Below, piece by piece: positions 1,393-63,115 of a stretch of DNA of 64,000 nucleotides (position 1 is its first letter; each line of letters starts with the position of its first letter). The notes under the pieces were generated by a model that saw only the letters and a program-made list of their open reading frames with translations, had not been told where the DNA came from and ran no database searches. The DNA lies in assembly GCA_002104905.1 (NCBI GenBank), contig MCFE01000042.1, forward strand, positions 124,001 through 188,000, read 5' to 3'. The stretch is from Basidiobolus meristosporus CBS 931.73. Lineage: Eukaryota > Fungi > Basidiobolomycota. The translations under genes and the position numbers were made by a program.

Positions 1393-3836
<2,444 letters not shown>

Positions 3837-4096
3837 AGTTGACCAAGGTTGCCAGCCCACATAGTAGTATTGTTTTCCTTAATTTGATTTGATATATGTC
3901 TGAAAGAGGTGTGAGGGATTTTCATTGGCAAAAATACTGACCATCACATCAAACTTGCTCCTGGTGAATACTTCGCCATGAGCAGCATATACATTAGTTC
4001 AGACAACGTGAACCGTCTCGCCTGGACGGAACCTTAATCTCCCTTGAATACTTAGTTAGACTTGACTCTTGTCTGTGTATATACATTTTTCGAAAT

Positions 4097-26883: not shown

Positions 26884-28406
26884 TTACATGAGATGGCGCG
26901 TAGTAAGAATGCCAACTAGGGCTAAGAAAACATACGACACTGTTAATTGAAAAGATCCATTACCAGTTCTTTCGTGACCATGTTGCGCGGGATACTGCTT
27001 AGATCCGTTACTAGCTATTCCGTGACCGTGTTGTACAGGATACTGAATAGACCCATTGCCAGCTATTCCGTGGCTATGCGGTGTAGGATATTGGATAGAT
27101 CCGTTACTAGCTATTCCGTGACCATACTGCGCAGACTGTGTTCGAATTAGTAATCGGCCCACTACTTCTCGTGCAAACTTCAACTTACTAGTGCCAAGCC
27201 AACGCGTGGCTGAGTACCCATATCATATACGGAATAGAATGATCTTAGGAATACATCGCCAACAATCCATATAGCCTTCAGAAACAGAGCAATTAACATG
27301 CATCACAACGCTTCTCTATAAATCCTGTTACATACCTCTAACGATCCAGCTGAAGCAAACCCAGACATGCAGACACCTACTTCATCTTGAATAACGTATT
27401 GGTCAGGTGTGAGTGTGAACACCACATCCCCGAGTATGATATCGATGTTGGGATACATGGCATCGCAATCCAGCTGGTACAATCCTGCCGAACTTGTAGG
27501 TCTGCCATTCAGATACTCGACATTGATTAGGGCTGCGTCGCTTTCGGGTATAGTGATCAGACTGGTGCCTGTATCCATAGCCGCCTTTGTGGCGGTAATT
27601 TGGACGCCAGTGTTGGCGATCGAAACGCCGTTAAGTGGAAGAGTCCAGTAATTCTCTTCAACTACGTCAATCCAGTTGAGCGATCCTGAAAAATGGGATG
27701 TGTCATATCCACCAAATGTCACTTCACCGCTGTCCGGATACCCGCCCAACCACACACCAAACATGCTCGCGTTGACCAAGTTTTGTTCAACCATGTTGTA
27801 GAAGGGTGGGTTAACTCGCATTTGGTTGATTGATGCGAATGCCATGCCAAGGATGCCATCGGCTGTAGAGTTGGCAAAAAAGCTGGACTCTGAGGTTGCC
27901 AAACCAAACTTTTGTTCATTCAGAGTGATCCCACCAATGGTGCACGTGTCTTGTCCGATCATCCCTGTTAAATTCCCAGTACCATATTGAAGGGAAAACT
28001 CTTTGTCAAATTTATGAAATGTGGTGGATTTGATGGGTTGAAACTTCCTGTGGTTGATACACGCCGCGGAACTGCACCAAACAGACGGCACCCAAAAGTC
28101 CGCACTTCCCGTGTCAAAAATCACCGTGAACTTTTGCGGAGGTGTCCCTATCGTCACCTCTCCATAATACGACAGATCATAGCTGTTGGTCAACTCGAGG
28201 GCTCCGTTTCGCTTGTGGAGCTTTTGCAGATACGTGCTGTTCTTGATATGCGGGTACTTGTATTGGAGTTGATAAAGCGACTGTTCCAACTGACTACGAA
28301 TGTTTCGAGAGGACCGATGTGACTTGAGTTTCATGCGAACAAGGTTGTCACCGCTGACCGCCGATACGGCAAGGCAAAGTGTGGTGAGCAAGAGCAGTGA
28401 CTTCAT
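26884..28406 (-). CDS. Secreted pepsin-like (A1) aspartic protease with GPI-type tail, copy 2 (intact); introns 27276-27335 and 27136-27188
   Basis: Same motifs as copy 1 with an open frame throughout; last exon 26884-27135 is 84 codons ending [16 protein letters not shown]. Confidence 0.92.
26944..27135 (-). repeat. Coding 48-bp (16-aa) tandem repeat x4 in the stalk of protease copy 2
   Basis: [16 protein letters not shown] / [16 protein letters not shown] / [16 protein letters not shown] / [16 protein letters not shown]. Confidence 0.9.
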
Positions 28407-29454
28407 GACAAGAACACTCCTGGAATTTGTTGGGAATGGATTCGCACCCGGCACTCTTATACCTGATTCAGACCTTGGCTTGTAGGATAAGAATTTAGCC
28501 TCATCAGCGATCATCATATCCCGATTCTCACATGGCTGAACATGCCAGTACGGAAAGCAACCAGGTATTACTCTATATCCTTCGGTCCCGGATATTCCAA
28601 GTATTCTTCAAGTGGCCTATAATGAAAACCAGAGATAAGAGCAAATCTGTATAAGTGATCAGAGTTGTCAAAATTAGCAAATCACTGATCCTACTTTTCC
28701 AGGTTTAGTGCCAATCCTGCGTTGTTGCGATCCTAGAGGTTCTTGTTTATATCTCTAACTAATTTTAAGATTAAATCCGTATATCAATACAACATATATT
28801 CCATCATAAAGTTACATCTGAAGTTATGTGATGTTGTCCGTGCTTGTTGGTGTTACCACTGTAAACAGTGCAACGATTCCGTTATTTTGATATGAAAGCA
28901 TTGGCACTTACATGTTGCTTTCTCACTTCTCTTGATTATTGCTTCGACTGTTGTGGTTCTGCTATCGCCCCGAGAGACGATATTGACCATTAAAAGATTG
29001 AAATTTGGTTGATAACCAACTGTGGATAATTAATTGTATTTATGGTAACTCCTAAAAATAATCCTCACAAACCTCCGTCACGTAGATTGTCCACGCGTTC
29101 GACGCGAGCTCAAGCTCAGAGAAGTATACTAGATTTTACTCAACGCACACTTGAGTCCAAGTAAGTATTTATGTCAAGAATACTTTACGTTGCTCTTGGG
29201 AAGTTGACATTGTTGTTCCTTTTTCTGGTTATCTTCCGAGAAGAACGGTAAAAATATTCGAGCCTTTAAATCCCGACTTTTCCTCATTTCTTTTTCAAAA
29301 AGCCACTTCAAAATTCTCTCTCACCATTACAAAGCGAACTTGGATATCCCAATTCAAGACGCCTAATGCGCTCCCAATCTTTCCAGAGCCACACTGAAGG
29401 TATTCTATACACTATATATTAACTCTCCTTTCAAGTGCTAAGCTTGATATATAT

Positions 29455-34029: not shown

Positions 34030-36760
34030 TTAGAAACCCTTCCTCCTCTGTTAATATCCCAATTGAAGTAACATCGTACATAATAAACCATTCACACTTA
34101 CTTTTGAAGCAGTTCTATACTTAGAGCAGCATTGGTGATATTATTACTTCCATTCTATCTGCTGATGGCGATAGCTCCAATTGACACCCAAACAGTAAAG
34201 GTTTGGCTGATATATGTGTAGGTGAAGGTGGTTTCGGGGGATGTGTTCATAGTGTTCCGTTTTCATATATTCATAATGCATAATGGTCCGTTTTCATCAG
34301 TGACTCCACCCTATTTGTAGTTATCAACATCGGGCTGATACCTCGATGATTCTTAAGTATTGTGGATATACTGAATGGGCAATATCTTCGGAACCTAACT
34401 TCCCATTATCATATCTGGCTTTCCACCACAAATATACACACCATCTTTTTTTCAACAATGAAGACACAATCCGAATCCTCCAATCCATGTCCGAATTCTG
34501 GCTGCTGGGTTGGCACAGGCGAATCTAGAAATGCACATGGCAACAGTACGCGAATATCAAAGTTTAGTGAAAATCTCAAATGTCGGACTGAGGGAGCAAC
34601 GAATCCCACTTTTCATGCAAGACGTGCATAGATATAAAGAATCGTTTTGTGGCTGACTGATGTGTTGGTTTGCAGGATATTAGCAAATTGGTGAAGTCCT
34701 GGATATCATTATTGTCAAATGGACCCAAAATGTGTATACCACTTCAATGAAGATCTAGTAAGCGATATTCCCAAAAATGAGAGGCTTACTCGAACTTTTG
34801 AAATGCGGCTTGGGGGCCATTGGGCAGCTATTCAGTACAAAGTATTTCAATGATTTGTAGCATCTCATCAGAAGATGATCGCAAGTTACATGTGAAGTTT
34901 GAATCTTATGTTGCTGATTGTCAGCTTACCACGCAGATTGTAAAACTTGAATCTTAAACATCGACTAATCCTTAGCATAGTTCCTAAAAACATTTTGTTG
35001 CATTTGTATATTCTCACTAATGGAACCAATATATTATTCCCACTTGATAACGCTTCACAAGCAACGCTATAGCCCCAGCAGCTGTTGTAAATTTGGGATT
35101 TACACCTAAATATTTACATTAGCTTGGTCGTCTAGATCATTCCTCTTTGTCGGGGTTCACTTCGAATATTTTCTCCAAAATGCCAGAGTTGGCACACATG
35201 TTCTCGGGGCCTTGCTTGCAAAAGTATTTATACCACTGGCCATTCATTCATATATACCACTGGCCATTCCAATTATTTTTGACTACCGTAATGAACATGA
35301 TTTGAATGAATATATATGTTTAGATCTACTCAAATGACCAAATGGGTCAAAGCAACGTTTCCTACTGATTCAATAGGAGTTTTATCCCAAACTTTTTTAA
35401 CTTATCCACTGCATTGGGTGTATCGGTGTATCGGTGTATCAGACAATCACTGTTGCAATTAATTACCATGGACTACCAGATGGAAATGATGGTTTACAAA
35501 TCATCATACGGTGTTCAATATTGCAAAGCAAATCCCTCGACCTATTGCTCTTCCCAATACAGAAGCAATGCCGAGAAAATTAGAACTGATCTGTAATAAT
35601 GATATGCACTATTGCATTATTCATGTAACACTGGCATTCTTCAGCATCGGTGAATACATTAGATTTGTGAGTTCTCACCGTATAAACCTATCCCACCCTC
35701 AAGGTATCTCATTCCCTAGTAGCATCACCTACCCGATCATGTTCATATCGGGATTAAGCTTTTACAGCTTACGGCGGATCGTGGTGGTTGAAGTTTAAAA
35801 GCAACTTCCTATGTCATGGAGTAAATCCATGTGGGGAATGGTGGGATGAAACCAGGGCGGTTGAACCAATGGAACTTTGTATGATCTTGGAGACGGATAA
35901 GTCAACCCAGTTAGACCCTAGACCTAATCCGAATGCTGGATTTTATGGCACCATTGAAGTGGACTGAATGGAAACCACACATATCTAGTGGCAACCTTAG
36001 TAAAGATTTCCTTGTCATCTAGCGTTAGAAGTGAAAAGCTGGAATACCTGACAAATTGCTGTAGGCTTATATGGACACAATTACCATGGACAGTAACCGC
36101 TATCATTCATCGTCTACATTCAGCAACACTCTGAATACAGTTGGCGCAGCGGTGAAGGCGACCTCACCCTTCGTACCAGATACTTTATCGTAAAAAGCAC
36201 CAACGCAGATCTCAGTATCAAGCGATCTGATCATCAACACACCTCTGCGAAACCTGATTCCTCACCAAACGGTGTGATCATATATGTTCTAATTCGAAGA
36301 TTAATGGTGTGATGCAAGTCCCATGTTTCAACACCGGAACCGGCTTGATAGGGAAATCAAGTCCTTCCAATGGCCGCAATAGTAACACCTGGACTGATGT
36401 ATTTTCACGCGCTAGTTTGCTGCCATAAAAGGGTACCGATGGTGTGATGTATGCTCGGACCAAGCACTACCATTTGAGGCCCCTCCCAATGCCAAAGATT
36501 GTCAATTTGAAACGGCGAGAAATCCCTTCCATGGCATCATCAATCAAGGTATCTACCATCCGACCTGTGTAACCTGGCTTTGTTAGTATAGATGAGATCT
36601 TGGGAATTGGCAGGGATCAACAAGCAGCGAATGGTGAAAGGCCACACGAGGAATATAACGTTGTTGAAAATCCGGTTTCTCGGTATTCTTGGTATCCGAG
36701 GCCGAACGGTTGATGATATAAATGGGAGGAGGGATCCATTCTTCGTTTTACAACTTCACC

Positions 36761-38044
36761 ATGGCACCAAACATTTTTAGTCGTCTCAGAGGACTTGACG
36801 CACCAACCGTCGTTGAGAAATCAAAGGTATTCTGCTGACCAGATTCTTTTGCCTGCCAAATTTTTCTGACCTTCGTACCAGGACGCCGTTCGAATCGGAA
36901 TTTTAGGCGCTGCTAGGATTGCCCCTCAATCATTGATCAGTCCGGCCGCTGGACTGAGCCAGGTGCTGATTGCTGCAGTGGCTGCCAGAGATATCAAAAG
37001 AGCCGAGGTGGGTCAACAATGCTCCACTGATGTATTAAGCATCTGGTGACCATGTTGACATTTCAATTACTTTCAAAGGAATACGCAGTGAAGCACAGTA
37101 TCCCTAAAGCATATGGTAGCTACGAAGAGCTGCTGAATGATACCGAAATTGAAGCCATCTACAACCCCCTTCCTAATGCTTTGCATTACGAATGGACCAT
37201 TAAGGCACTTCAAGGTAAAGGGTGCTTGTTTGAGTACTCTCCGAAATCGGGCTAAAATCTTCGCACAGCGGGAAAGCATGTTTTCCTTGAGAAGCCAGCC
37301 GCATCCAATGGAGAAGAGGCCCAGAGGATCTTGGAGGAATTGCAACAGCATCCGGAATTGGTGATACTAGAGAATTTCCACTATCAATTCCATCCAGCTC
37401 TCCTTCGTTTCCGGGAGTTGGTGAACGACGGAAGGTTGGGTCAGATCAAAAACGTCTCTGCCATCATTCGTTTACCAAATCTGTTCGGTTTGGACGATAT
37501 ACGCTTCAACTACGACCTTGCTGGAGGAATCAACATGGATTTGGGTTGTTACGCGGTTTCCGCCTTGCGGTTCATCACAAATACCGAGCCACTGCGCGTG
37601 CTCGAAGCAGAACCCACCATAGTGAAAGAAAATGTCGAGGGAGAAATGAAGGCGAAGTTGGAATTTCCAGAGGGTATTACCGGAGAGATTCATGTCTCCA
37701 TGATTGAATCTTGGCTTTCCTTCCGAAACTTTCTCCCATTGCTCACAGTCGAGGGAGAGCAGGGAGAGGCAAGTATATCTGCCTTCGTTCTTCCACACAT
37801 GTTCCACACCATCACTTTGAAGAACAAGCGTACTGGTGAAACAGAGTATGAGAAAGTATATGAGGAAGGCCGTTCCTCTTATCAATATTCATTAAAGGCA
37901 TTTGCTGACAAAGTGCGTGGAAAGGCTACCGATTACTGGTATCCTTTCGACAAGAGCGTTGGCAATGCGGTCAGCGTCGATAGGATTTATGAAGGCGCTA
38001 ATATGAAGTTGCGTGGAAAGCCGCTGAACCAATCAAATAATTAA
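36761..38044 (+). CDS. GFO/IDH/MocA-family NAD(P)-dependent oxidoreductase; three 5' introns (first 36827-36881)
   Basis: Spliced VRIGILGAARIA (Rossmann), YNPLPNALHYEWTIKALQ|AGKHVFLEKP, ENFHYQFHP, DLAGGINMDLGCY. Confidence 0.88.
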
Positions 38045-38337
38045 ATCTGCATTTATCCCAAGATTCCCACTCCCCCAGACGAAGCCACTAAATCATCTAG
38101 CCCCAGATCTACTGACAATTAATGGAATTTCCTGAGAGGCTATTGATTACCCACACGCTCCGAATTAACTTTGAATTTACAGAAAATAAAAGGAAAATGC
38201 GGAGCTTATTCTGAGCGTTGGTTGTGATTCATTTCAAAAACCATTTGATTTCATGTAAATTGTAATAATATATAAATTATTGTGAGGATTACGAGGAAGC
38301 CGGTTTGCCATACTACACGCCAAGATTCACCTTCGTC

Positions 38338-40062
38338 TCAGTCATTTGATAGTATGATTCTATTCATATATGTTGCAATGATTGCATGCCCAGAGACTGA
38401 GTTCGCAGCAGCGAGGTAGTTGTCTGGACGGACCAAGAAGAAAACGGAATGAGAAGGCTTGTATTGCTCGACGAAATCACCACTGTCTTCGTACACCTCG
38501 AATGGTGAGTCGGTCAGTCCATTGCTGGTTGGGCAAATGACGCTCACCTGAAGTGCGGTGAAGTCTGAGCGATTGTGTTTCTTGGCCAGGGCTAGGTACG
38601 GCTCAAAATCTAACATCCCGCTGTTCGATGCCCATATGAACAAGTGATAAGCACCCGGGTTCTTCTTGAAGATCTCAAATATTTTGATGAGCTGCCTCCC
38701 TCCTGGACTACGCTTGGAAAGAACGGCGTTCGGAACGCGTTGTCCATTCTTGATAGCTGTAATGGGTGTTTTGAAGTAGCCGACCTCCAGCGGTTTCTCA
38801 GTGAGAAGTCCTTGGGGGTAGGCGATCAGCAGCTGGGACATGTTGTCGAAGAAGGTTTTGTACACGATGGGTAGCTTGCTCAGAGGGGGAAATATCCAAT
38901 CACGTAAGAAGCTCAGCCATCCTGACTCCAGAGTGAAGAACTGACGGAGTGCCGATGTCCCTTTCAATACACCGCGAGCAACCGGTACACGTTCATCCAC
39001 GTAGCTCTTGAGTAGAACATCCGGATTCCCGACCCCCTTAAGGATCAAGTTCAATTTCCACGCAATGTTGAAGGCATCTTGCATTCCAGTGTTCAACCCT
39101 TGAGCGCCCCATGGGCTGTGAATATGCGCTGCATCTCCGGCCAGAATCACTCTTCCAACAACAGTCTGGTCAACCATTCTCTCGTTGACATTATAGGTGC
39201 TATGCCACAGAATCTCTTTCGCGTGGACGGTATAGGGGGTGGTTAACCTGTTGATCAGCTCCATCAAGGACGCTTTGGATAGCTCTTCCTGGCTTGTTTC
39301 GTGGTCCAGCTTGACAAACACCCGATGTACATTGATATCAATTTTGGCAATCGCCAGCATCGCGTCGGAATGCCAAAAGATGGTGGTTTCATCCCTGGAC
39401 GGTAGGTCAGTGTCCATGATTATGTCACAGAGGCCCCATTTCGTCTCGATGGTAACTCCATCGAACTTCGCCCCAAGTTTCTTTCGAACGAAGCTATGGG
39501 CGCCGTCACAACCAAGAAGAAACTTGGATTCGAATTTTCTTATCTCACCCGAGGCGGATTTTAGTGTAGAAATGACCTTCTGATCATTGGATTGAACGAA
39601 ATCAGTAAGCTCCCAACCGGTTTCTACCTGCTTGTGGTAAACATTTTCCAGCTCCTCCCTCAGGTATTGCTCGGTTTTCCATTGGGGAATGAACAGAAGG
39701 AATGGATAGTCGGATCGTACCGAGCCAAGATACGGAAGGGTAGCGACCATGGTGCCTTTGGAAAAAAATCGAATGGCCTTGTTTAGCGTAGCCACGCCGT
39801 TTTCTTGGAATTTCTTTGCGAGATCCATCTGGTCCAGAATCTCCATCATGCGGGCCTGCAGGGAGATGGCTTTGGACAAACGAGCATCATACGCTACCTT
39901 ATCAACCTGAAAGAAGGAGTTGGTTAGTAGGCTTGGGCGAATTAAGTGGCTAGACAGACTTACAATTCGGAATGGAACACCAAGGCGGGCAAGACTAAGG
40001 GCAGCAAACAGGCCAACGCTTCCGGCGCCAATAATTAGCACTTCAGTAGAGTTTTCAGACAT
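38338..40062 (-). CDS. Group A FAD-dependent monooxygenase (FAD_binding_3, PheA/TfdB-like); in-frame 57-nt intron 39907-39963
   Basis: VLIIGAGSVG, GCDGAHS (DG motif) and GDAAHIHSPWGAQGLNTGMQDA (GD motif); intron GTAAGT...CTACTAAC...TTTCAG. Confidence 0.9.
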   Translation of the reverse strand: MSENSTEVLIIGAGSVGLFAALSLARLGVPFRIVSLSSHLIRPSLLTNSFFQVDKVAYDARLSKAISLQARMMEILDQMDLAKKFQENGVATLNKAIRFFSKGTMVATLPYLGSVRSDYPFLLFIPQWKTEQYLREELENVYHKQVETGWELTDFVQSNDQKVISTLKSASGEIRKFESKFLLGCDGAHSFVRKKLGAKFDGVTIETKWGLCDIIMDTDLPSRDETTIFWHSDAMLAIAKIDINVHRVFVKLDHETSQEELSKASLMELINRLTTPYTVHAKEILWHSTYNVNERMVDQTVVGRVILAGDAAHIHSPWGAQGLNTGMQDAFNIAWKLNLILKGVGNPDVLLKSYVDERVPVARGVLKGTSALRQFFTLESGWLSFLRDWIFPPLSKLPIVYKTFFDNMSQLLIAYPQGLLTEKPLEVGYFKTPITAIKNGQRVPNAVLSKRSPGGRQLIKIFEIFKKNPGAYHLFIWASNSGMLDFEPYLALAKKHNRSDFTALQVSVICPTSNGLTDSPFEVYEDSGDFVEQYKPSHSVFFLVRPDNYLAAANSVSGHAIIATYMNRIILSND

Positions 40063-41965
40063 TTGAAAGATGATGACACTTGAGCTCCTGAGCGGGGATT
40101 TTATTCGTAGCAAGTTTGCCCTTCGGAGTCATCTTTTCTCAAGGGATCATAAAGTTAGATGATTACACTAGGCTAAATGAAGTGCTTTTTCTGGATAATG
40201 ACTCCATAAGGCTTGTGTATTACTAATAACTACAAATGCCTGTGTTCTATGTGTGTCTTCACTAATTGATTGTCTCAAATCCACCGGCCTTGATAAGCAC
40301 ATGGCAGTAAATGAGAAATATGCTGGCGAAGCTCATATGTGTAACCTGTTCAACAAGATGCTTCGCTATAGTTGGCTATTTCAGTTGGCAATTTGCTAAT
40401 CAAAACAATCGCCCTACCAGCCTGTTGAGCAGCCCAAACAAGGAAAACAATCGTCTTGGCGCGAAATGAATGATCCACGCTAATGGAAAGGATCATCAGC
40501 TCTTGTGGTTCCATGGACTAACCTTTAGATAGTTTAATTGATGAAATACTATATGGGTTCGGGTAGCTAAATGTGAGCCAAATATTCTCGAAGATCACTG
40601 ACAATCCCGATCAGATTCCATCGTCAGATTCAAATCGTTCTTCATGGAGGATGCAACCACGTGCTAAATAGGGCTCAGCCGAAGTGTGCTGTGGATGATT
40701 AATACAGCTGATATGACTAACGGTACTTTACCCGGTAGAGGCAAGGAATGTGCGCCATATTGGTTTCGGAAAAGCTGATTCGTCGGGAAAACGTCAATAA
40801 TGAGTTCAACCACAGCTGCCAAGAATTACTGGTTGGAAAATGACCAAAGTAAATCTCAGTTCCTTTAGCTCGAGGTGGGTAGCATTTTGCATCAACGAAC
40901 TAAAGCCATCGCATTTTGCTTGATTGGTAATATGGAAATAGGGCGGTGGATGACACTACTTGATCGTTACTCTCCAGAACCATGGCAACAATTACGCGAG
41001 CATTGCTAATAGTATTGTGCCAGTATGATCATATGGATTGTTCATTACTGGTGACCAATCCAATGACCTGGCTAATTGCTCTTGTAGCTATCTGGGATTG
41101 CAAAGTTGTCCGCTATCATGGATCAATGACATCAGTGGTACCATCAGATCCTGCATCAGCCAAAAAAAGTTGTTTCCAAAGTGTGGTTACACAGGACTGT
41201 TGCACCCACATCCGAGGTTTAATCTCGGGTTAGATTACAGAGAAGATCAATGCCATATTGAGAATAGCTATGTCTGCCAGGTATTAAATTTGCGGATATT
41301 TGGGCTTGTATCTCGACGATGCCTTCCAATATTTCACCAAATAAAATATTGAAGAGCATGGGAGAGTAATCCTATAGGAGAGCTTTGCCCGGGAAAATAT
41401 ACCGTCTGTTGTGACGGTCCTGGTCTCTACCAAGTAGTGGCGTCGAGATGTCCTTGCGTGAGTAAGTTGCAATCATAGGTAACAGCTACATATGGTTGTT
41501 TCGCCCCAATCTGGCTCTTATGCGAGCCTTAACGTGTTAATGAGTTAATATAGGAATCCGGTGGATGATTGAACATAGTCTCAGCAGAGGTCCCTTGTCT
41601 GTAGCCAGTTATGCCTAGAAATACCTGGAATAATTATATTAGCTCTTCGGTTAAGTTCTGCGACTCTGTAGCACCAAGTAATCTTAGCTAGGGGAAGCAA
41701 AATCCCTCTGGAGAATCTTGTCGAATCTATTCTAGAATAAGCATGGTCGCGGTAACTGATTTGTCAAATGGTAAGAGGATGGCTGGTAGCTGATGCACTT
41801 GCCTTTTCAGTTCATTCAAATCGCGGTGTTGACGATTCCTGAGGAGGACTACGGAATCCATTCAAGGACGCTCCACTCAAACCAAATCAAGACAAAGCGT
41901 GGGCACCACTAACACCATTCTCTCAAAAGTTGGCATATTACTTGTCAGGAGATTGCAGCATCATG

Positions 41966-41973
41966 TATATAAA
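41966..41973 (+). promoter_or_regulatory. Putative TATA box of the NRPS-PKS gene
   Basis: TATATAAA about 65 bp upstream of the ATG at 42038. Confidence 0.5.
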
Positions 41974-42037
41974 TAACGCTTCAGACAATGCTGCATGTCA
42001 GTATACATCTTCAATTCCGCTCTACAAATATACAAGC

Positions 42038-45000
42038 ATGCCGTCTGTTAACACCGAGGCAAAACACTACCAGTTTACCGTTGAGGAGAAGCGCCTTTGG
42101 GTCAGATGGAAGGTGTACGGGGAGGCTGGCACTGGGAATACCCCTATTGTCCAATACATCAACGGAAAGCTCGATGTTGATAGGTTTCTCGATGCAATTG
42201 CAGCGGCAGTGGCCCAGTTCAATGCACTCCAACTTTACTGTGTGGAGGCCGAAGATGGAACTGGCGCTTTTGTCAAATGCTCTGAAGAGGAGCTTCTGAG
42301 CCGCTCGTTTGTTGGCTATCATGACTTTTCCCAGGATGAAAATCCTGAGGTTTCTGCTCGCGATTTTGCGTGTGGTTTTGTTGGCAAGGGCTTCAATATA
42401 GAGAAATTTCCCTTACACGAGCATGCGCTTATCAAGTATGACGATGACAAATACATGTATGCCACTCATTTTGCGCATATTATTATCGATGGAAGATCGT
42501 GGAGATTGTTTGCATCTCTACTATCAGCTATCTACCAGACGGATCCCGAGGCTGGTTTATCCTCGCAAGTTGGCTGTTTCAGCAAGTATGCAGATCGAGA
42601 GGACTACCGCAGATTGACGGAGGGCTATAGAGATGCCAAAGCTCAACTTGACGAGAAATCCTCTGTTCATTGGGAAAAAACCCTGAAGGATGCCAAATTT
42701 TTACTAGACTTTTCGAACAGACTGCCAACTAGAAGCAGTCATCAAGGGAGCGTAAACTCTGGGACACGTTTGCGACAAAAAATCCCTAGAAAACTCTCGG
42801 AGTCCATGGATAGTTTCGCTAGAGCTGAGAGTACTACCTTCTTCTGTATCTTTGCCACAGCAGTGAACGTTCTCCTCTATCGCTACTTTGGTCAAGACGA
42901 CATAACAATTGCGTATGCAGTAGATGCCAGACCGATAAAGCAGAGCCAATTCATGAGCTTATTGGATGGATTCTGTGTCAATGACATGCTTCTTCGAACC
43001 CAAATCGATCCAGGATTAACCTTCCGGAAACTCTGCCAACAGGTATCTGCTCAGCGCTGGGAGGATCGTAGACATCAATACTATCCGCTCATAGATGAGA
43101 TCATGCCCCAGGTTCGAAAGCAATACCCAGACTTGGAAGGCAGCTTTTCCAACATCATGATCACGCAATCACCTCTTCACAGAAATGTCTTGCAGCTAGG
43201 CTCGGGGATTCGATGCGACCCCGATGAGAATGAAATCACCTACGAAGATACCAATTACGATCTGACATTCATTATTGATGAGCATGACTTTAAGTATGGT
43301 GCGGGAGCTGTCGAGTATACTTTGTTCTACCGAAACTCAAAAGTTTGACCCCGAGTTTTCTCGAAGGATGTCCGAGAACCTAATTACGCTGCTAGAAAGC
43401 GTCTTTGGGGAAAAGGGCGAGCTGGATACACCAATTAGCCATTCATCAATTCTATGCAAGAAGGAGATTCAGCTGCTCCAGTCTTGGAATAATACACATA
43501 AAGCAGAGTATGTTGACGGAAAGACTATTCTGGAGCCTATCCGTAGCCAAGTACGAAAGAACCCAACCGCGCTGGCTTTGATCAGCGATGAGGAGAATTT
43601 AACTTACGGGGAGCTGTGGAACGGGGCAAATCAGCTGGCCAGACATCTAATAGACCTGATGGTTAAGCCCGAGACTCTTGTCTGTATGTTGATGAGCCGT
43701 TCAGTCCACGCGTTCGTCACCACTATTGGCATACTCAATTCAGGCGCAGCTTACCTGCCAGTCGACCCAGCCTACCCTATTGATCGAATTGAGTTCATGC
43801 TGGAAGAATCGGAGTCGAAATACATGGTGACCGAAAGAAAGTTATACGAGAGTAGCGACCGCCTTCGTTCTTTGATTGACAGCTTCCCGGGCGTGGTTGT
43901 ATTCTATGACGATCCAGCCTGGCGAGATACCGTTTCTGAGCAAGAGCTGGAGCCCATTGCCAACCCGGACAACCTTGCCTATGTTATTTTTACTTCGGGG
44001 TCAACCGGAAAGGTATGAACATATAATCCACCATCTCGAAAAACTTACTAAAATGATTCACCTAGCCCAAGGGTGTGATGATGGCCCACTCATCCCTACG
44101 AAACTTGGCACGATGCTATGCGAATGCCTTTCAGATTGACGACACAGCGAGAGTGCTGCAGTTCAGTTCGATTTGCTTTGATGCAACTGTGGGCGACTGG
44201 GCCAGTGCTTTTAGCTCCGGTGGGGCATTGGTGGTTGTCAACTCGGCTGCCCATCTAGTTGGCTCTGGTTTCATGGATACAGTCTATCGTCACAAAGTGA
44301 CATATTGCCTCATTCCCACCTCAATGCTGAACACCTTCCCAGAGGAAGAGGTGTATAAGCTAGCGAGCATGAGAGCCCTCTCGATCGGAGCTGAGCCTCC
44401 CAACCTACAACTGATGACCCGTTGGAAAGATCACGGATTTATGCTGATGAATTCGTATGGCCCTACGGAGACTTGTGTGATTGCAAATACCACTCAATTT
44501 ACTGGTGAGAAGCATTACGCTTGCATAGGAAAGCTACTGCCAAATTACCAAGCGTTTATGCTGGATAATAATCAGCAAGTGTTGCCAGCGGGAATCATTG
44601 GCGAAATGTGCATCGCCGGTGCCGGTCTTGCTCGAGGATTTATTAACCAGCCTGTTCTGACAGATCAACTCTACCCTACTGTTGATTTGGCAGGGTTTGG
44701 TCCGGTGAGAGTCTATCGCAGCGGAGATGTTGCTTTATTCCATGATGATGGCGAGGTTCAATTCATCGGACGGATTGATTTCCAGGTGAAAATCCGCGGA
44801 TTCCGCATAGAGCTGGGAGAAATCGAGAACAACATCCGACAACAAAGCGCGGTTGATGTCAAGGATGCAGTAGTAATGGCACAGGACGACAAAATGGGGA
44901 TCAAGCGATTGGTTGGCTACGTTGTACTCGAACCACACCAGAAGGAGCAGGAGCATAAAGCCCTAGCGTCCAAGATCCGTCAGGAGCTGAAGCGCCTGGT

Positions 45001-48000
45001 CCCACCGCACATGGTTCCGAGTCACATTCTGATCATGCAGGAGTTTCCTGTCTCTCCTAACGGGAAAATCGAGCGCAAGTTATTCCCAAATCCGGTGGCA
45101 AATATCTCGGAGAACGACTTGAATGAAGCATGGTCGAATACTGCCTCCGAATCCAGTGATCAGAAGTCAAGTCTTCAGGCTAGGTTAGAGAAACTCTTCG
45201 CCCAACTACTTGATCTGGACCATATTGGCGTGAACGAAAACTTCTTTGACTTGGGCGCGAATTCCCTGCTTATTGTGAAGGCCCATTCTATCATCAAGAA
45301 GATAGATAAATTTGCAAACTTCTCGCTAGTACACTTATTCAAGTATCCCTCCATTCATGCGCTAGCTCAACATCTCGAGGAGAATTCAACCAAGAAACCC
45401 CAACCAGTCGAGCGTGACAGTAAGGATGAGATAAGCAATTTGGAAGCTGGCAACGAGGGGCAGTCCATACATTTGGATGAAATCGCTATTATTGGTATAT
45501 CCTGCCGCGCTCCTGGTGCAGATAACCATGAACAGTTCTGGGAAAATCTTCGTAACGGTGAAGAGAGCATTTCGTTCTATACGAATGAGGAGCTTCTAGC
45601 AGCCGGTGTTTCCCCTGCGGAGTTGAGCAATCCAAACTATGTGAAAGCACTTGGCGCTATGAATCCAGAATCCATTCAAACTTTTGATGCTGACTTTTTC
45701 GGAATGGCTCCACGGGAGGTATTGGTGACTGACCCCCAACAAAGAATCTTCTTGGAGTGCAGCTGGGAGGCATTGGAGAACGCTGGGTACAACTCGGCAG
45801 GCTATACAGGGAAAGTCGGCGTTTACGCCGGTGTCGGTATAAACCACTATCTCCATAACTATATCTTGCCACAAGAAGATTTGGTGCAAGATATGGGTGC
45901 CTATCCAGTCATGATAGGTAACTCTCCCGATTTTCTAGCTACTCGAGTTGCCTATAAACTTGCCCTTCGTGGTCCTGCTATCACCGTTCAAACAGCTTGT
46001 TCAACCTCACTTGTTGCTGTTCATCAAGCCAAGAATGCCATACGCAACGGTGAATGTGACATGGCCCTGGCAGGTGGAGTTTCATTGGGATCATTGGAAA
46101 AAAGCGGTTATGTATATCGTGAGGGAATGGTTGCTTCGCCCGACGGACATTGTAGGGCCTTTGACCAAAACTCCAAAGGCACTGTTCTGGGACAAGGGTG
46201 CGGTGTCGTACTCCTAAAATCGTTAGCTAAAGCGATTGCAGATAAAGACAACATATATGCTGTACTGAAGGGCTCTGGAGTCAACAACGATGGTTCCCTC
46301 AAAGTTGGCTTCACTGCGCCTAGTGTTCAGATGCAGGCGAGTGCCATCACTAGCGCACACCAGGATGCTAAAGTTAGCCCTAAAGACATTTCTTACGTCG
46401 AAACTCATGGTACCGGCACCATTGTTGGTGATGTTATCGAGCTGGAGGCCCTGAATGATGCTTTCACCAACAATCAAGTGGCACACCATGAGCGATATTG
46501 TGCGATCACGTCCGTCAAGACCAACATTGGTCATACCGATTCTGCTGCTGGTGTAATTGGTCTTATCAAGGTGTCACTGGCATTGTACAATGAGTACATA
46601 CCTCCCCATCTCCATTTCAGGGAGCCGAATGCCCAAGTAGATTGGGCTAACAGCCCATTTTATGTGAATACAAAATTGACTCCTTGGAAGAGAACCGAGG
46701 GAGTGCCTCGTATTGCAGGAATTAGTTCATTCGGAATGGGAGGGACCAACGCTCATGCTATTCTGAGTGAATCACCAGTATCGATCAGCAAGGAAACGTC
46801 GGATTCCAAACTCCCTTGGTATCTACTGAACATATCCGCCTTCAACGACTGGTCTTTGAAAGAAAATACCAAGAACCTTGTAAGTTGGGTTCGTTCTCAA
46901 CAAGGAGTCAGGTGGGACTTGAAAGATATTGCTTGCACGTTGGCCATCCATCGGTCACAATTTCCGAAGAGACAGGCATTGCTAGTTCAAAATATCTCCG
47001 AACTAACCAGCCTAGATGAAAGTGGTCTAAGCGATAGAATAGTTTCCACCCCGAGAAAGAATGGACTATCCACCACCAATTCATTGGCCAGCCTGAAGGA
47101 AGTCACCGAGAAAGACAAGCATACTGTCTTCCTGTTACCTGGACAAGGTTCACAATACATATCAATGGGCCGAGATTTGTATAAGCACTACAAAACGTTT
47201 GCTAGTGTTATCGACGAATGTCTGCAATATGCAAACGATTTTAATGAGAGCTTACATCTCTCAGATATATTTTTCAATGCAACCGACCCTGAGACGATAC
47301 AGCTTCACGGAAATATGTCAGCCATTGATGTTCATCGTCGAGTATGCCCTGGCCAAAACCCTTGAATCTTGGGGGATACAGCCAGACAGCATGATTGGGC
47401 ACAGCCTCGGCGAGTATGTAGCCGCGTGCTTATCGGGAGTCTTTACACTAGAAGATGCTCTTAAAGTAGTGATATTCCGTGGTGCATTAATGAACTCACT
47501 ACAGTCGGATAGTGCTATGTTGAGTGTTCGTTCATCTGAGGTTGATTTAGAAGCCCATATCGAGAGAATTGGAAGAGAGCGGTTCGACTATGCGGTGAAA
47601 AACTCCCAGGAGCATTGGGTGATAGCTGGTGAGGCAAAGGATATAGAGAACTTGCAGATTTCATTATCCACCGCTTCTATTTCTTGTCGACTATTGAAAA
47701 CCAGCCATGGATTCCATTCCAGATTTATGAATCCTTTGCTGGATTCGTTCTCGCTGTTCTTATCTAGTATTCCTCTGAATGAACCGAAAGTCCCCTTTGT
47801 CTCCTGTGTCTCTGGCACATGGATTACTGGTGTGGACGCTACTAGGGTTAGCTACTGGGTTGAGCATCTTCGTAATCAATGTCGTTTCGGGGAGGCTGCA
47901 CAGTTTTTACTCAAGAATCAACATTCAGAAACTGTGTTCATAGAGGTTGGCCCTGGAAGAGGCCTAAGTACATTGATCAAGGTAAACGCCATCCAATTGA

Positions 48001-49541
48001 ATGTCAGCCATGTTACAACGCCGGAGGTCACAACTATCACCACAATGCCTGCACCGTCTACTGCACCAGTTGCTGCCAAAAAAGCGGAAGACTCTGAGAC
48101 CTTTGCAGTGGTCAAGGCCCTGGCTCAGCTCTGGAGTGAAGGCCTTCAAGTGAGATGGGATGTATACTACTCGTTGAAGGAATCGCCATCGCAAAAGGTT
48201 CCGCTTCCTTCCTATGCATTTGATCGCAAACGTCATATGCTGAAGAAAGCCAGAGCCTCTTTCACCTCTGTTGCAACAGTCGATATCAAGGCCAATCAAG
48301 AAAGACCTAGTATCCCTATTCCTGAGGATTCCATTCTTGAACAGATCACGCCCACTGAAGAGATGATTCAGAAAGTCTGGCAAAGCTTCTTGTATTTGGA
48401 TTCCCCACCATCGGTCGAATCTGATTACTTTGAGCTTGGAGGGGACTCCATGATGGCAGTTCAGCTTGTTGGGAAAATATCTGAGCTTTTTCCTGGAGTG
48501 GATCTAGGAATACATGCCTTATTGAGGAATCCCACCATCAAGGGATTAGCAAAGGTCATTGACTCAATGACCATCTCAAATGCCAGCAATGGGGATGATA
48601 CAGCAGCCGAGTCAAATGTAAACGACTCCACCTCGACACTTCGGACCATTAATCTCTCAAGCTCGAACGATGAGATATTGGTTCAATTGAAGAACGGCCT
48701 TGGAAATCCCGTGTTCTTGGTTCATCCAGTGGGGGGAGACATCTTTGGCTTCCGCTCCCTGATCAATCAGCTTGCAAGTAACATTACTGTCTATGCCTTC
48801 CGGGCACCCTTCTTTACGGAGTCTCGCAAATCTCCTTATGCAGACGTCAAGGAAATGGCTGCGGCTTATGTGCAGCTTTTGCTATCAAAGTTGGACGCAA
48901 ACTCTCGACAAAATATCCATTTGGGAGGTCACTCAATGGGCGGCGTAGTTGTGTATGAGATGGTTCAGCAATTGAATTCTTTGGGCTGCAATGTCAGCAG
49001 AATCATACTATTAGATCCTCCGCTTAATCCTGTCTCTTCGAGTGTTTTAGCAAGATCCTACTTTATGCCTGTGCTTGAGGACCCAGTCGATATAGCGGAG
49101 TATATATTCGGCCATCGAGTTAACCTTCCACCGGATGATAGAGCAGAGCTGGCTCACCTGCCGCTCACGGTTGCTATCTCAAAAGTATGCTCATTACTCT
49201 CCCGTGATATAGAGACGCTCGGCTTGAAGAAGTTGAGCGGATTGTCACCGGATGTTGTACTTTCTATTGGACGCACATGGGCCCATCATTACCTCATCAT
49301 GCGAGACTATCAACCTGAACCGATTCCGTTTAGAGAAAAGAATCGAGAGAATATTGTTCTGTATATCAAGAATTCTGAGGCAGACGGGTATTTCCCAACC
49401 TACGCCCATGTTGCATATCAAGATGCCATGCTCAGCGGTGGCTTCGATTTTAGACTTGTTCAGGTCCCTGGGAGTCATCAAACAATGCTGCTGGATCCAA
49501 ATGTCCAGTACATTGCTGCCGCTATCGTCCAATTTCTATGA
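42038..49541 (+). CDS. Hybrid NRPS-PKS, C-A-PCP-KS-AT-ACP-TE; intron 44013-44065; apparent frameshifts near 43339-43342 and 47303-47306
   Basis: C: AHIIIDG. A: TSGSTGK|PKG, FDATV, YGPTE, YRSGD, RGFRIELGEIE, NGKIER. PCP: FFDLGANS. KS: TACSTS, ETHGTGT, NIGH. AT: GQGSQ, GHSLGE, HGFH. ACP: FELGGDS. TE: GHSMGG...GSH. Confidence 0.93.
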
Positions 49542-52036: not shown

Positions 52037-52930
52037 GTCAATTAGAGTATATATATATATTGTGATGTTTATACCATGTATTGTAGACGGCTCTGTGCTT
52101 AGAGCTATATAATTTTGAACATACCTACTCCATAGATGCTATGATAATAACAATAATAACCGCAATATTAAAGTTTCGTTTTTTGCCGTAAGAAGTGATT
52201 TACAGAATCCAGATTTGTAAACTTCAACCATTTATCTGCCTACCATATTTCAAGTGGATTGCGATTTGAATAGGCAACCAGGCTCAAAAACACCAATATG
52301 GTTTCACTCTTGCCTATGTGCTTTAATATCAACTGTCAGGGATATCTGCTCGCGTGCCTTTGTGGCTTATAATTCTACTACTCTTACCACCATGAAAATC
52401 GGTGATCGGAGGGAATGTCATCATGGAGATCTCGAACCAATTATATGCAAAATGGTCAACTACATGATGAAACAGGATCTGTATCAAAGCGACGTTTTCT
52501 TAGATTCACAGATATTCAGAAAAAACTCAAAATCACAAAATTGGAAGGGTCCCAAAGATAGGCCGCAGATGGATTTTGCGCCTTCCAAAAGAAGCAGAGA
52601 TCCGTACAATTTCCATGTTTGGAGAGCGATTTGACAAATTGAGCTTAGTGACTTACCTACTATTTCGGGTCGGTTTTGGTAAACATTTGTCTAGCCATGG
52701 CTCTACAAAATAGAAAGCAAACCCCGGAATGATTCGGAGATACTACCGATTAGCCGCCTCAGTGAAAATTTCCACCGATCCGCATTAGCTATTTTGAGCC
52801 GAGCAACAAGGATCTCGAACAATGGGTGGTGGATATACGTTTAGTAGGACATGGAGCATTTGGGGAAAGACGAGGAATACTTAAACCCGTCTGTGGACCA
52901 GCTTTACACATCAACTACTCAGCTTTTCGA

Positions 52931-55348
52931 ATGATCTACAAGGAACTCCCTAAATTCGCTGCCGATGATGAGATCATCTTCGACAAAATTGATGAGCAAA
53001 CTCCAGACAACTGGATCCAGAGACATCCTAACATGATCAGACTTACTGGCAAGCATCCTTTCAACGCCGAGCCTCCTCTGACCGAACTTTACAATGACGG
53101 TTACATCACTTCGAATGCTAAGTTCTACGTGCGCAGTCACGGATTTGTTCCCAGACTTGAATGGGACACCCATACTGTGGAGGTTTGTGGCCTGGTCGAC
53201 AGACCCAGGGTCTTCACTATGGATGAATTGGCTGCCTTCCCCAAGAGACAGTTCCCTGTGACCTTCCCTTGTGCTGGCAACCGTCGTAGAGAAGTCAACA
53301 TGATTAAGCAATCTAAGGGTTTCAGTTGGGGATCCGGTGGCGTCTCTACCTCCATCTTCGGTGGTCTCATGCTAAGAGATTTGTTGCTGGCTTGTGGAGT
53401 CCAAGTTCCTACCGAGGAAGAGGATGACTGGCACGTTCACTTCGAGGGTGTTGAGATGCTTCCAAATGGTATCTACGCTACCAGTATCGCCTACTCCTAT
53501 GCCATGAATGAAGCCAATGAGGTGCTTATGGCTTATGAAATGAACGGGGTCCCCCTGCCTCCCGATCACGGTTACCCCATTAGACTTCTTGTCCCCGGAA
53601 CTATTGGTGGACGTATGGTTAAGTGGGTCAACAAGATCTTTGTCTCCAAGGTCGAATCCGACAACTGGTACCACATCTATGACAACCGTGTTGTTCCCTC
53701 CCATCTCTCTCCTGAGGAGTCAGTTGCCGGTAACTGGTGGCAGAAGATCAACTACATCATCAACCCCATCAACATCAACTCCTCCTTTGTCTATCCCGAG
53801 CACGATGAAGTTGTTCCTCTATCCCAACGCACTTACAACTGCCGTGGATACGCCTACACTGGTAACGGCAGCATGATCACCCGTGTTGAGCTCTCACTCG
53901 ACGACGGTGAATCTTGGATTTTGTGTAACATCGACCAACAGGTTCCCTCTCCCATCAGTAAGAAGTACTGGGCCTGGGCGTTGTGGTCTTACGATCTTCC
54001 ATTAGGCAAGCTGATCAGATGCAAGGAGATCATCGTACGTGCTTGGGATTCAACTCTGAACACTCAACCAGTAAATATCACCTGGAACGTGCTTGGCCAA
54101 ATGAACAACGCCTACTTCAGACTGAGGGTTGATGCCGTAGAAGATGCTAACGGCCAGGTGTCGTTCAAGTTTGTACACCCTGCTCCTACTGAGACCACCG
54201 GCTGGATGGCTGAGAAGTATGGAAGAACCCAGACCAAGGCCGTGGATGATGGCAAGCCCAAGAGCGGAAAGACATTCACTCAAGCTGAAGTCGCTAAGCA
54301 CAGAAGCCAAGATGACTGCTGGATCATCGTGAAGAAGAGAGTCTATGATATCACCAAGTTCGTAACCGAGCATCCTGGCGGTGTTGCCAGTATCATCCTC
54401 AATGCTGGTATCGACTGCACTTCTGACTTCGAGGCTGTTCACTCCTCTACCGCCCATGATATCTTGGAGAAATACTACTTGGGCGATATTGAGGGTGAAT
54501 TGAACAACGAGATCTCGGCCCTGCCTCAAGACGAAGCCGGCGAACTGGTGGCATTGTCGAACCAGTACCGCTCATTCCCATTGATTGCCAGAAGAGACTT
54601 AAGCCATGATACTCGCTTGTTCCGCTTCGAGCTACCAAGCCCTGAATACCGCTTAGGCCTGCCTGTAGGAAAGCACGTCTACCTCAAAGCAAACATCAAT
54701 GGAAAGGACGTGATCCGTGCCTATACTCCATACTCATTGGACGAAGAATTGGGTTACGTTGACCTCATTGTCAAGGTGTACTACAAGAACGTCCATCCTA
54801 AATTCCCCGAAGGCGGCTTGATGACTCAGTATCTTGACTCGCTTCAAATCGGTGAAACTGTGGGAATGAAGGGACCCGTTGGCCACTTCAAGTATGAGGG
54901 TCTTGGTAACTACGACGTTGATTTCAGTAAGTCTAGAAGACACGCTCACATCATCGGTATGATTGCTGGCGGCAGCGGAATCACTCCCATGCTTCAAGTG
55001 ATCAAGTCAGTGCTCAACAACCCATTGGACTTCACTAGACTTCATCTGCTGTATGCCAATCGTACCCCAGAGGATATTCTACTCCGTGAGGAACTTGACC
55101 AGCTTGCTGAAAAGCACTCTGAACAGCTCAAGGTGTGGTATACCGTCGATGGAGAGGCCCCCATTGACTGGGAGTATTCCGTTGGCTATGTTGACTACGA
55201 GATGTGCAAGGCGCATCTACCATCTGCCAGCAACGACAAGCGTAAAGCCATCATGTTGTTGTGTGGCCCAACTCCAATGATCCAGTATGCTTGCTTACCC
55301 GCTCTTGAGAAGATGGGCTATGATCCAGAGGCGGTTATTACTTTCTAA
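52931..55348 (+). CDS. niaD: Eukaryotic assimilatory nitrate reductase (Moco, dimerisation, cytochrome b5, FAD/NADH domains), intronless
   Basis: RLTGKHPFNAEPP, Moco cysteine in CAGNRR, PPDHGYPIRL, IGGRMVKW, HPGG heme motif, RAYTP, GGSGITP, and CGPTPM (NADH-type). Confidence 0.95.
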   Translation: MIYKELPKFAADDEIIFDKIDEQTPDNWIQRHPNMIRLTGKHPFNAEPPLTELYNDGYITSNAKFYVRSHGFVPRLEWDTHTVEVCGLVDRPRVFTMDELAAFPKRQFPVTFPCAGNRRREVNMIKQSKGFSWGSGGVSTSIFGGLMLRDLLLACGVQVPTEEEDDWHVHFEGVEMLPNGIYATSIAYSYAMNEANEVLMAYEMNGVPLPPDHGYPIRLLVPGTIGGRMVKWVNKIFVSKVESDNWYHIYDNRVVPSHLSPEESVAGNWWQKINYIINPININSSFVYPEHDEVVPLSQRTYNCRGYAYTGNGSMITRVELSLDDGESWILCNIDQQVPSPISKKYWAWALWSYDLPLGKLIRCKEIIVRAWDSTLNTQPVNITWNVLGQMNNAYFRLRVDAVEDANGQVSFKFVHPAPTETTGWMAEKYGRTQTKAVDDGKPKSGKTFTQAEVAKHRSQDDCWIIVKKRVYDITKFVTEHPGGVASIILNAGIDCTSDFEAVHSSTAHDILEKYYLGDIEGELNNEISALPQDEAGELVALSNQYRSFPLIARRDLSHDTRLFRFELPSPEYRLGLPVGKHVYLKANINGKDVIRAYTPYSLDEELGYVDLIVKVYYKNVHPKFPEGGLMTQYLDSLQIGETVGMKGPVGHFKYEGLGNYDVDFSKSRRHAHIIGMIAGGSGITPMLQVIKSVLNNPLDFTRLHLLYANRTPEDILLREELDQLAEKHSEQLKVWYTVDGEAPIDWEYSVGYVDYEMCKAHLPSASNDKRKAIMLLCGPTPMIQYACLPALEKMGYDPEAVITF

Positions 55349-61521: not shown

Positions 61522-61536
61522 CAGAACTTCAGGTAG

Positions 61537-63046: not shown

Positions 63047-63115
63047 ATCCAGAGTTTCAGCTTCAAATTTCAATTTTTGAGATTTTTGGGTGATTTTTGA
63101 TGGGTGGGATCAAAA

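Follow-up and report, generated by a model that had tools for sequence, protein, structure and literature searches.

A probably functional, bacterial-type peptide synthetase-polyketide synthase hybrid in the fungus Basidiobolus meristosporus

Does Basidiobolus meristosporus, a fungus of the amphibian and reptile gut and an occasional pathogen, carry a working hybrid of a nonribosomal peptide synthetase (NRPS) and a polyketide synthase (PKS), and what would such an enzyme make, with the help of which neighbours? The question is posed by a locus of strain CBS 931.73 contained in 64,000 nucleotides (nt) of contig MCFE01000042.1 (assembly GCA_002104905.1, positions 124,001 to 188,000, forward strand); we refer to this whole stretch as the window, and all coordinates below count from its first letter. 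An earlier interpretation made from the letters alone (the sequence-only reading) had seen here an undescribed three-gene cluster around a synthetase of reversed domain order with frameshifted open reading frames (ORFs). We find a single hybrid gene at 42038-49541 on the forward strand that encodes one polypeptide of 2482 residues with the domain order C-A-PCP-KS-AT-ACP-TE. It is probably a working single-module synthetase of bacterial type, kept by selection in the species, that acylates and then extends one amino acid.

The gene is spread over four long forward-strand ORF pieces that together span 41930-49541. Its 2482 codons (658 + 1824) are obtained when one extra homopolymer base is passed over at each of two frame breaks, and the start was placed at the first ATG (42038) downstream of a TATATAAATA element. 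The features of the gene are as follows.

42038 to 49541, forward strand: NRPS-PKS hybrid gene; exon 1 at 42038-44012, intron at 44013-44065, exon 2 from 44066 to the stop codon at 49539-49541.
41966 to 41975, forward strand: putative TATA-like element TATATAAATA, 63-72 nt 5' of the proposed ATG.
42062 to 43285, forward strand: condensation (C) domain; active site A-H-I-I-I-D-G, in which the catalytic second His and the Asp are retained.
43339 to 43342, forward strand: frame break 1, a +1 shift in an AAAA run where the C domain ends.
43542 to 45067, forward strand: adenylation (A) domain; core motifs A3-A10 intact, intron directly after SGSTGK.
44013 to 44065, forward strand: spliceosomal intron of 53 nt, GTATGA ... 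TACTAAA ... TAG, a typical small fungal intron.
45182 to 45376, forward strand: peptidyl carrier (PCP) domain; LGANS.
45476 to 47008, forward strand: ketosynthase (KS) and KS-AT linker; Cys-His-His intact (TACSTS, HGTGT, NIGH), bacterial hybrid type.
47126 to 47954, forward strand: acyltransferase (AT); GQGSQ, GHSLGE and SHGFHS (HGFH).
47304 to 47305, forward strand: frame break 2, a TT run within the AT domain, +1 shift.
48366 to 48557, forward strand: acyl carrier (ACP) domain; LGGDS.
48708 to 49538, forward strand: thioesterase (TE) domain; Ser-Asp-His triad in GHSMGG, LLDPP (Asp) and GSH (His).

Pfam assigns to the translated pieces, in order, Condensation, AMP-binding, AMP-binding_C, PP-binding, ketoacyl-synt N and C, the KS-AT linker, Acyl_transf_1, a second PP-binding and Thioesterase. 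The first piece (41930-43348) holds Condensation and the second (43275-44018) the N-terminal half of AMP-binding; the third (44075-47365) runs from the remaining AMP-binding through AMP-binding_C, PP-binding, ketoacyl-synt N and C and the linker to the start of Acyl_transf_1, and the fourth (47199-49541) contains Acyl_transf_1, PP-binding and Thioesterase. Ketoreductase (KR), dehydratase (DH), enoylreductase (ER) and methyltransferase (MT) domains were not found by Pfam in any synthetase piece. In the A domain, the motifs SGSTGK/PKG, NSYGPTE, YRSGD, GRIDFQVKIRGFRIELGEIE and NGKIERK are all intact; the intron splits the A3 motif, joining SGSTGK to PKGV, and the gene model deposited for this strain uses the identical junction. 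An AT with GHSLGE and HGFH is of malonyl type by the usual motif rule. Pfam and the motif reading agree with what had been proposed for this enzyme, namely the domain order with intact catalytic residues, and a malonyl-type AT (by its HGFH motif) in a protein free of reductive domains.

Three ORF junctions had been taken for frameshifts. One of them is the genuine intron at 44013-44065, and the other two are true one-base breaks. Across both of these, homology to the C-domain and AT-domain consensus continues ungapped from frame to frame. Two candidate introns were tried and rejected: a 73-nt GT..AG intron at 43294-43366 restores the frame but would remove the conserved end of the C domain, and one at 47290-47310 is at odds with the ungapped homology across the frame change. 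In order to compare other isolates, the contigs (assembled, not raw reads) of four public runs, X1 to X4, were aligned to 42800-48300. X1 and X2 represent one sample with about 200x depth and about 99.6% identity to the window; X4 is a relative, about 86% identical, whose single 15-kb contig shows 680 differences in 4.9 kb. The X1/X2 contigs are one base shorter than the window at 43339 and at 47304, the X4 contig is one base shorter at 43343 and at 47304, and the frame is open in each; X1, X2 and X4 all carry an uninterrupted frame across both break sites. The other X4 indels (four inside the intron and two compensating pairs) bring no further net frame change over 5.5 kb. Because the contigs of other isolates confirm it, we read both overlapping junctions as one-base shifts rather than introns. 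The breaks are absent from the other isolates, and the gene is therefore not a decayed relic; the sequence-only reading had allowed for real frameshifts and a silent gene, a condition that X1, X2 and X4, which read through, do not share.

As an observation of its own, X1 holds two 127-nt contigs at 45691-45817, with depths of 99 and 92, one of them equal to the window and the other with 4 differences, and X1 and X2, although from one sample, pick different alleles at several sites. The X1/X2 sample therefore looks heterozygous, polyploid or mixed.

The substitution pattern bears on how old the breaks are. Between the window and X1/X2, 17 of the 21 listed single-base differences are synonymous, as are 10 of the 11 at which X1/X2 agree with X4 and the window differs, and 14 of the first 20 listed X4 differences fall at third codon positions. 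Judged by these counts, the synthetase gene has been under purifying selection on the window's own lineage, and the breaks are therefore assembly errors or very recent. Each break is an extra base in a homopolymer run, which is a known kind of error in assemblies made from PacBio reads only. The CBS 931.73 assembly is PacBio-only (PMC7466969). Most likely, the breaks are homopolymer errors that PacBio sequencing left in the assembly, a judgement we hold with reasonable rather than high confidence.

A true pseudogene in CBS 931.73, with both insertions real, the protein truncated in the C domain and the gene functional in other isolates, is the less likely reading. Two independent +1 breaks do stand in the assembly, and two in 7.4 kb is a high number against none in 15.6 kb of the midasin gene of the same window or in about 10 kb of its other coding sequence. 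X3, all five of whose pieces match the window exactly, spans neither break, so that nothing contradicts the assembly for CBS 931.73 itself. Furthermore, we looked for a public RNA run holding the synthetase stretch and found none, and subtelomeric secondary-metabolite genes are often lost. These points all count against a working gene in this strain. Set against the pseudogene are the homopolymer nature of both breaks and the ratio of 10 synonymous to 1 non-synonymous difference on the window lineage, which indicates no period of relaxed selection.

If the gene is intact, why has it been overlooked? Homology searches were run on single exons or ORF pieces of the synthetase, and the word-based protein search is blind to full-length relatives of about 2500 residues. 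A 1096-residue A-PCP-KS piece matches at 100% identity a CBS 931.73 protein, ORY03808.1 ('acetyl-CoA synthetase-like protein, partial'), on a 202,103-nt scaffold. This recovered deposited model is partial at both ends, beginning within the A domain and ending before the second frame break; no full-length deposited model of the synthetase was found. In the portions of their survey drawn on here, Tabima et al. (2020) count about 30 NRPS or NRPS-like genes in B. meristosporus and one NRPS-PKS hybrid, N161_14278, in strain B9252, the only one reported in Zoopagomycota, with none in CBS 931.73; the A domain of N161_14278 falls into a group with bacterial surfactin A domains. N161_14278 is probably the ortholog of the CBS 931.73 synthetase, the survey probably counted no hybrid in CBS 931.73 because the deposited model is partial at both ends, and the published count of zero is probably wrong. 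The claim that the system was undescribed stands in part: the B9252 hybrid with its bacterial-like A domain was already listed, and its domain order, product and neighbours are not given in those portions of the survey. Among the papers we searched, none characterises a Basidiobolus hybrid or its product. What the present analysis adds is the exact gene model, the open frame in other isolates, the signs of selection, the likely reason why the gene was missed in CBS 931.73 and, as described below, the exclusion of one neighbour from the cluster.

What, then, would the enzyme make? Judging from its domains, it should yield a small, probably ring-shaped compound in which an acyl group, a single amino acid and a single malonate unit are joined. 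In the mechanism we propose, the A domain would charge the PCP with a single alpha-amino acid, which is probably large and hydrophobic. It keeps the equivalents of Asp235 and Lys517 and should therefore take an alpha-amino acid, and since its pocket is lined by small and hydrophobic residues, a large hydrophobic side chain is our guess. The hand-derived specificity code reads D-A-G-C-L-I-S-V-I-K, on a GrsA-based numbering that recovered 9 of 9 known GrsA code residues; it matches no standard specificity code known to us. The C domain would then acylate the amino group of this amino acid, drawing on a soluble acyl thioester, either acyl-CoA or acyl-ACP. With the ATG at 42038, only 8 residues precede the C domain, which leaves no docking or carrier domain upstream, and such a donor is proposed because the C domain has no docking region and the window no gene for a donor partner. 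This fits the earlier suggestion that an N-terminal C domain without an upstream module performs an acyl-starter condensation. Subsequently, the KS would condense malonyl-ACP, charged by the cis AT, with the N-acyl-aminoacyl chain to give an unreduced beta-keto thioester, and the TE would release the chain; closing a lactam, as MucE does, is the most likely route and would yield an N-acyl tetramic acid. MucD (C-A-PCP) and MucE (KS-ACP-TE) form N-acyl tetramates via TE-mediated lactam closure, in vivo as well as in vitro (PMC10161427). By analogy with this pair and with RtcN/RtcK, the N-acyl tetramic acid already named by the sequence-only reading is a reasonable product. Finally, a divergently transcribed FAD monooxygenase may hydroxylate the product, a guess made from its enzyme family.

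There is a lesser chance that the enzyme is functional and follows another chemistry, taking its donor, aminoacyl or peptidyl, from a separate NRPS or NRPS-like protein, or hydrolysing the chain at the TE to yield a methyl ketone or a pyrazinone-like product. The main alternative of this kind is a beta-keto acid that loses CO2 to become an N-acyl amino methyl ketone or, cyclised, a pyrazinone-like compound, as in coralinone. Several findings pull in this direction or weaken the case for acyl-starter chemistry with lactam closure. In a ranking of solved structures from the PDB, the C domain scores best against the elongation-type TycC6 (62 bits) and lower against the starter C domains of RzmA (40), SrfAA (40) and CDA (30 bits); compared with the C domains of the closest bacterial relatives, it reaches only 22-26% identity, and the TE is distant from every solved TE. 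Most of the bacterial relatives sit inside multi-module lines, the 30 or so NRPS and NRPS-like genes listed for B. meristosporus could include a donor, and CorA, which ends in the same series of domains, releases a beta-keto acid that decarboxylates (PMC10979478). On the other side, there is no docking region before the C domain and no carrier-protein gene in the window, a stand-alone counterpart in Mesorhizobium has only a phosphopantetheinyl transferase (PPTase) gene beside it, and lactam closure by a TE has been demonstrated on exactly this type of chain (PMC10161427). We therefore keep to acylation, one malonyl extension and lactam release as the preferred route.

A more specific version of this route is tentative and, in our estimate, rather unlikely: a domesticated bacterial lipo-tetramate synthetase that, together with a co-acquired monooxygenase, makes a reutericyclin-like N-acyl tetramic acid directed against gut bacteria. 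The tetramate class includes proton-ionophore antibiotics such as reutericyclin. If this version were true, the product would be the first fungal tetramate to arise through lactam closure instead of Dieckmann cyclisation. More generally, a small acyl-amino-acid-malonate product, if the gene is expressed, would be relevant to a gut fungus and occasional pathogen that faces bacteria.

Do the neighbouring genes belong to the same pathway? Two lie on the 5' side of the synthetase.

38338 to 40062, reverse strand: class A FAD monooxygenase of 555 residues, K493DRAFT_404891, a flavoprotein hydroxylase of the PRK06184 kind.
36761 to 38044, forward strand: GFO/IDH/MocA oxidoreductase of 367 residues with 3 introns, D-xylose 1-dehydrogenase-like, deposited as 'NAD(P)-binding protein'.

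The arrangement described by the sequence-only reading, with the monooxygenase divergent from the synthetase and the GFO gene converging on the monooxygenase, holds; its three-gene cluster does not. GFO has orthologs in B. ranarum (76% identity), chytrids (45-52%), Mortierellaceae (40-43%) and basidiomycetes (35-39%), and on the 11-kb B. ranarum contig JASJQH010007514 no monooxygenase or synthetase follows GFO, the downstream DNA being unrelated to the window. Given a pan-fungal gene and broken synteny in B. ranarum, a three-gene cluster is therefore not supported; GFO is a conserved, vertically inherited fungal gene and most likely a bystander to the pathway. That all three genes act in one pathway, as their adjacency and divergent plus convergent arrangement might suggest, is improbable in view of these two results and of the 3 introns of GFO against one each in the other two genes. 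Our search for other Basidiobolus copies, made via GFO, reached only the B. ranarum GFO contig, which lacks the synthetase block. On that contig (locus L005), two genes of 239 residues each, without Pfam match, lie on the same strand at 3287-4006 and 6661-7380, 3.4 kb apart, followed by an NRPS-like A-T-reductase gene (T, thiolation domain); the pair looks like a repeated unit at the position held by the monooxygenase and synthetase in the window.

The unit therefore comprises at most two genes, the synthetase and the monooxygenase, which diverge over a 1.97-kb spacer and sit between ordinary fungal genes near a chromosome end. Nothing recognisable was found between 49541 and 52826, where a nitrate reductase gene begins, nor between 40113 and 41930. 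The monooxygenase contains a 57-nt intron at 39963-39907 on the reverse strand that is removed in the deposited model; since it is in frame and stop-free, a plain ORF scan runs on through the intron and gains 19 false residues. The named homologs of the monooxygenase are all bacterial, at 30-37% identity, with no other fungal protein among the best 120, and the homolog search turned up no annotated B. ranarum ortholog. The monooxygenase may belong with the synthetase as a possible tailoring partner. Evidence for the link consists of adjacency and a shared bacterial affinity; two points speak against it, namely that the contexts of two bacterial monooxygenase homologs show no synthetase nearby and that the bacterial synthetase loci we examined contain no such monooxygenase, giving no sign of co-transfer.

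How did a synthetase of this kind come to lie in a fungal chromosome? Apart from the strain's own protein, the named matches that cover the A-PCP-KS piece are all bacterial, with 36-43% identity over more than 90% of the query; they come from Gammaproteobacteria, Thiotrichales, Mesorhizobium, Lysobacter, Burkholderiaceae, Verrucomicrobia and others. The sole named fungal match, a Mortierella NRPS, covers the A-PCP part only, at 33%. A large representative search gave nothing above about 46% identity except the window's own model; its list is ranked by summed scores and filled by giant multi-module synthases, among which no single-module relative is discernible, and those giants that were looked up are bacterial where named. 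The nearest language-model (Atlas) clusters with recorded taxa are likewise all bacterial. The KS scores 340-615 bits against bacterial hybrid or trans-AT KS structures, 214 against fungal psoA and 219 against animal fatty acid synthase, and the closest matches of the A domain are LgrA (314 bits over the entire chain, 172 in its best single domain), Tyc and Apn, with fungal psoA (105) and SidN (81) far behind. Domain order, motifs and the affinities of KS and A domain are those of bacterial modular NRPS-PKS hybrids, and every domain of the synthetase appears to be of bacterial type.

The gene combines these bacterial relatives with eukaryotic flanking genes and a host-type intron and composition, the signature of horizontal acquisition, and its GC content matches its surroundings. 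From the host-like GC content and the intron, the transfer would therefore be old. One finding weighs against such an origin: no close donor lineage was found, the best identity being about 41%. Contamination or a chimeric assembly, to which the exclusively bacterial relatives might point, is effectively refuted already by the deposited model's spliceosomal intron inside the A domain, the intron-bearing fungal genes that flank the synthetase on the 202-kb scaffold, its presence in contigs of independent runs (including the 15-kb contig of the 86%-identical relative) and its host-like GC content. Widespread transfer of bacterial genes into Basidiobolus secondary metabolism has been published (PMC7466969; Tabima et al. 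2020, in the portions used here), and the bacterial-like KS of a Gigaspora NRPS-PKS is an analogous case. In the synthetase we have a clear-cut case of a bacterial megasynthase acquiring an intron and the composition of its host.

The remainder of the window is eukaryotic, with genes for midasin, a DEAD-box helicase, two aspartyl proteases, a sugar transporter and nitrate reductase as well as an array of long interspersed nuclear elements (LINEs). The two midasin ORFs (3006 + 2190 codons) are joined by a 53-nt intron at 10976-10924 on the reverse strand (GTGATG ... TACTGAT ... ACAG); their junction, considered as a frame break in a control for assembly indels, was rejected as such, being this intron, and the gene has no other interruption over 15.6 kb. 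Tandem paralogous aspartyl protease genes of eukaryotic type lie at 24498-25673 and 27303-28517 on the reverse strand, about 1.6 kb apart. A 2.6-kb AT-rich stretch (34100-36700, GC 0.40) without any ORF of more than about 95 codons separates the sugar transporter from GFO. On the other side, 3.3 kb downstream of the synthetase, an intronless assimilatory nitrate reductase gene of 840 codons (52826-55348, forward strand) is complete with Mo-co, cytochrome b5, FAD and NAD domains; the window showed neither a nitrite reductase nor a nitrate transporter. The ORF run at 58769-63073 on the reverse strand includes a reverse transcriptase (RVT_1) and is the LINE array at the chromosome end, coinciding with a strong positive GC skew over 58-64 kb.

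How does the Basidiobolus enzyme compare with known systems? Its architecture had been called unusual and reversed. C-A-PCP-KS-AT-ACP-TE is the ordinary bacterial NRPS-to-PKS order, its relatives are bacterial, and by its sequence the synthetase reads as a member of these ordinary hybrids. Bacterial C-A-T-KS-AT modules, from Mesorhizobium sp. CP034446 and from metagenomic proteobacterial proteins (P0170-P0179), share the domain order; A-T-KS is 38-41% identical to the bacterial counterparts over about 1070 residues, and C, AT and TE are 22-32% identical. The Mesorhizobium locus is collinear (C-A-T-KS-AT / AT-ACP / TE) and, like the Basidiobolus synthetase, a stand-alone single module; it differs in its split into three overlapping or adjacent ORFs (10001-17085 of locus L002) and its mobile-element setting. 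A PPTase gene lies upstream, with genes for VirB-type (type IV) secretion and IS66 nearby, and the locus may be a mobile, possibly decaying single-module hybrid. Most other bacterial relatives are modules within long assembly lines, unlike the stand-alone fungal enzyme, and none is characterised. In one of them, an FAAL-ACP gene stands directly 5' of the C-A-T-KS-AT gene, an arrangement of lipo-initiation.

With respect to chemistry, the closest parallels are MucD/MucE of Streptococcus mutans and RtcN/RtcK of Limosilactobacillus reuteri, in which a starter C-A-PCP is followed by KS-ACP-TE without reductive domains, the same order of steps as proposed for Basidiobolus. This likeness is one of domain order and chemistry, not of sequence comparison. 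The catalytic logic is thus already characterised, with differences in layout: the bacterial systems are two proteins without AT, whereas the Basidiobolus synthetase is a single polypeptide with a cis AT in a fungal host. For the MucE assay, a separate malonyl-CoA:ACP transacylase supplied the ACP with its malonyl group (PMC10161427). Among the window ORFs that were scanned, no thiolase, HMGS or DUF35 domain (those of MucA-C) turned up, nor did a homolog of the MucF deacylase. CorA, the coralinone synthetase of Corallococcus (A-T-C-A-T-KS-AT-ACP-TE), has a terminal C-A-T-KS-AT-ACP-TE block and one unreduced malonyl extension, the same as in Basidiobolus; it differs in an extra loading A-T, which the Basidiobolus synthetase lacks, and in its donor, an amino acid. 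The beta-keto acid that CorA releases decarboxylates and then cyclises to a pyrazinone (PMC10979478).

Within fungi, the synthetase departs from the PKS-NRPS family in its reversed order, its lack of DH, KR and MT domains and its terminal TE, and the Pfam domain order upholds the earlier statement that it is unlike fungal PKS-NRPS enzymes, TAS1 and SwnK. TAS1 and SwnK share with it the NRPS-first order. The C domain of TAS1, the tenuazonic acid synthetase (C-A-PCP-KS), uses acyl-CoA, and the enzyme makes a tetramic acid (PMC4640141). TAS1 stops at its KS, which cyclises without extending the chain, whereas the Basidiobolus KS is followed by AT-ACP-TE and so falls outside the TAS1 family. SwnK has the layout A-T-KS-AT-KR-ACP-reductase without a C domain; the Basidiobolus enzyme has the C domain and lacks KR and reductase, which places it outside the SwnK family as well. 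The synthetase opens no new kind of biochemistry; it belongs to the very small number of NRPS-first hybrids from fungi outside Dikarya, with the proposed step order of MucD/MucE and RtcN/RtcK and the terminal domain block of CorA.

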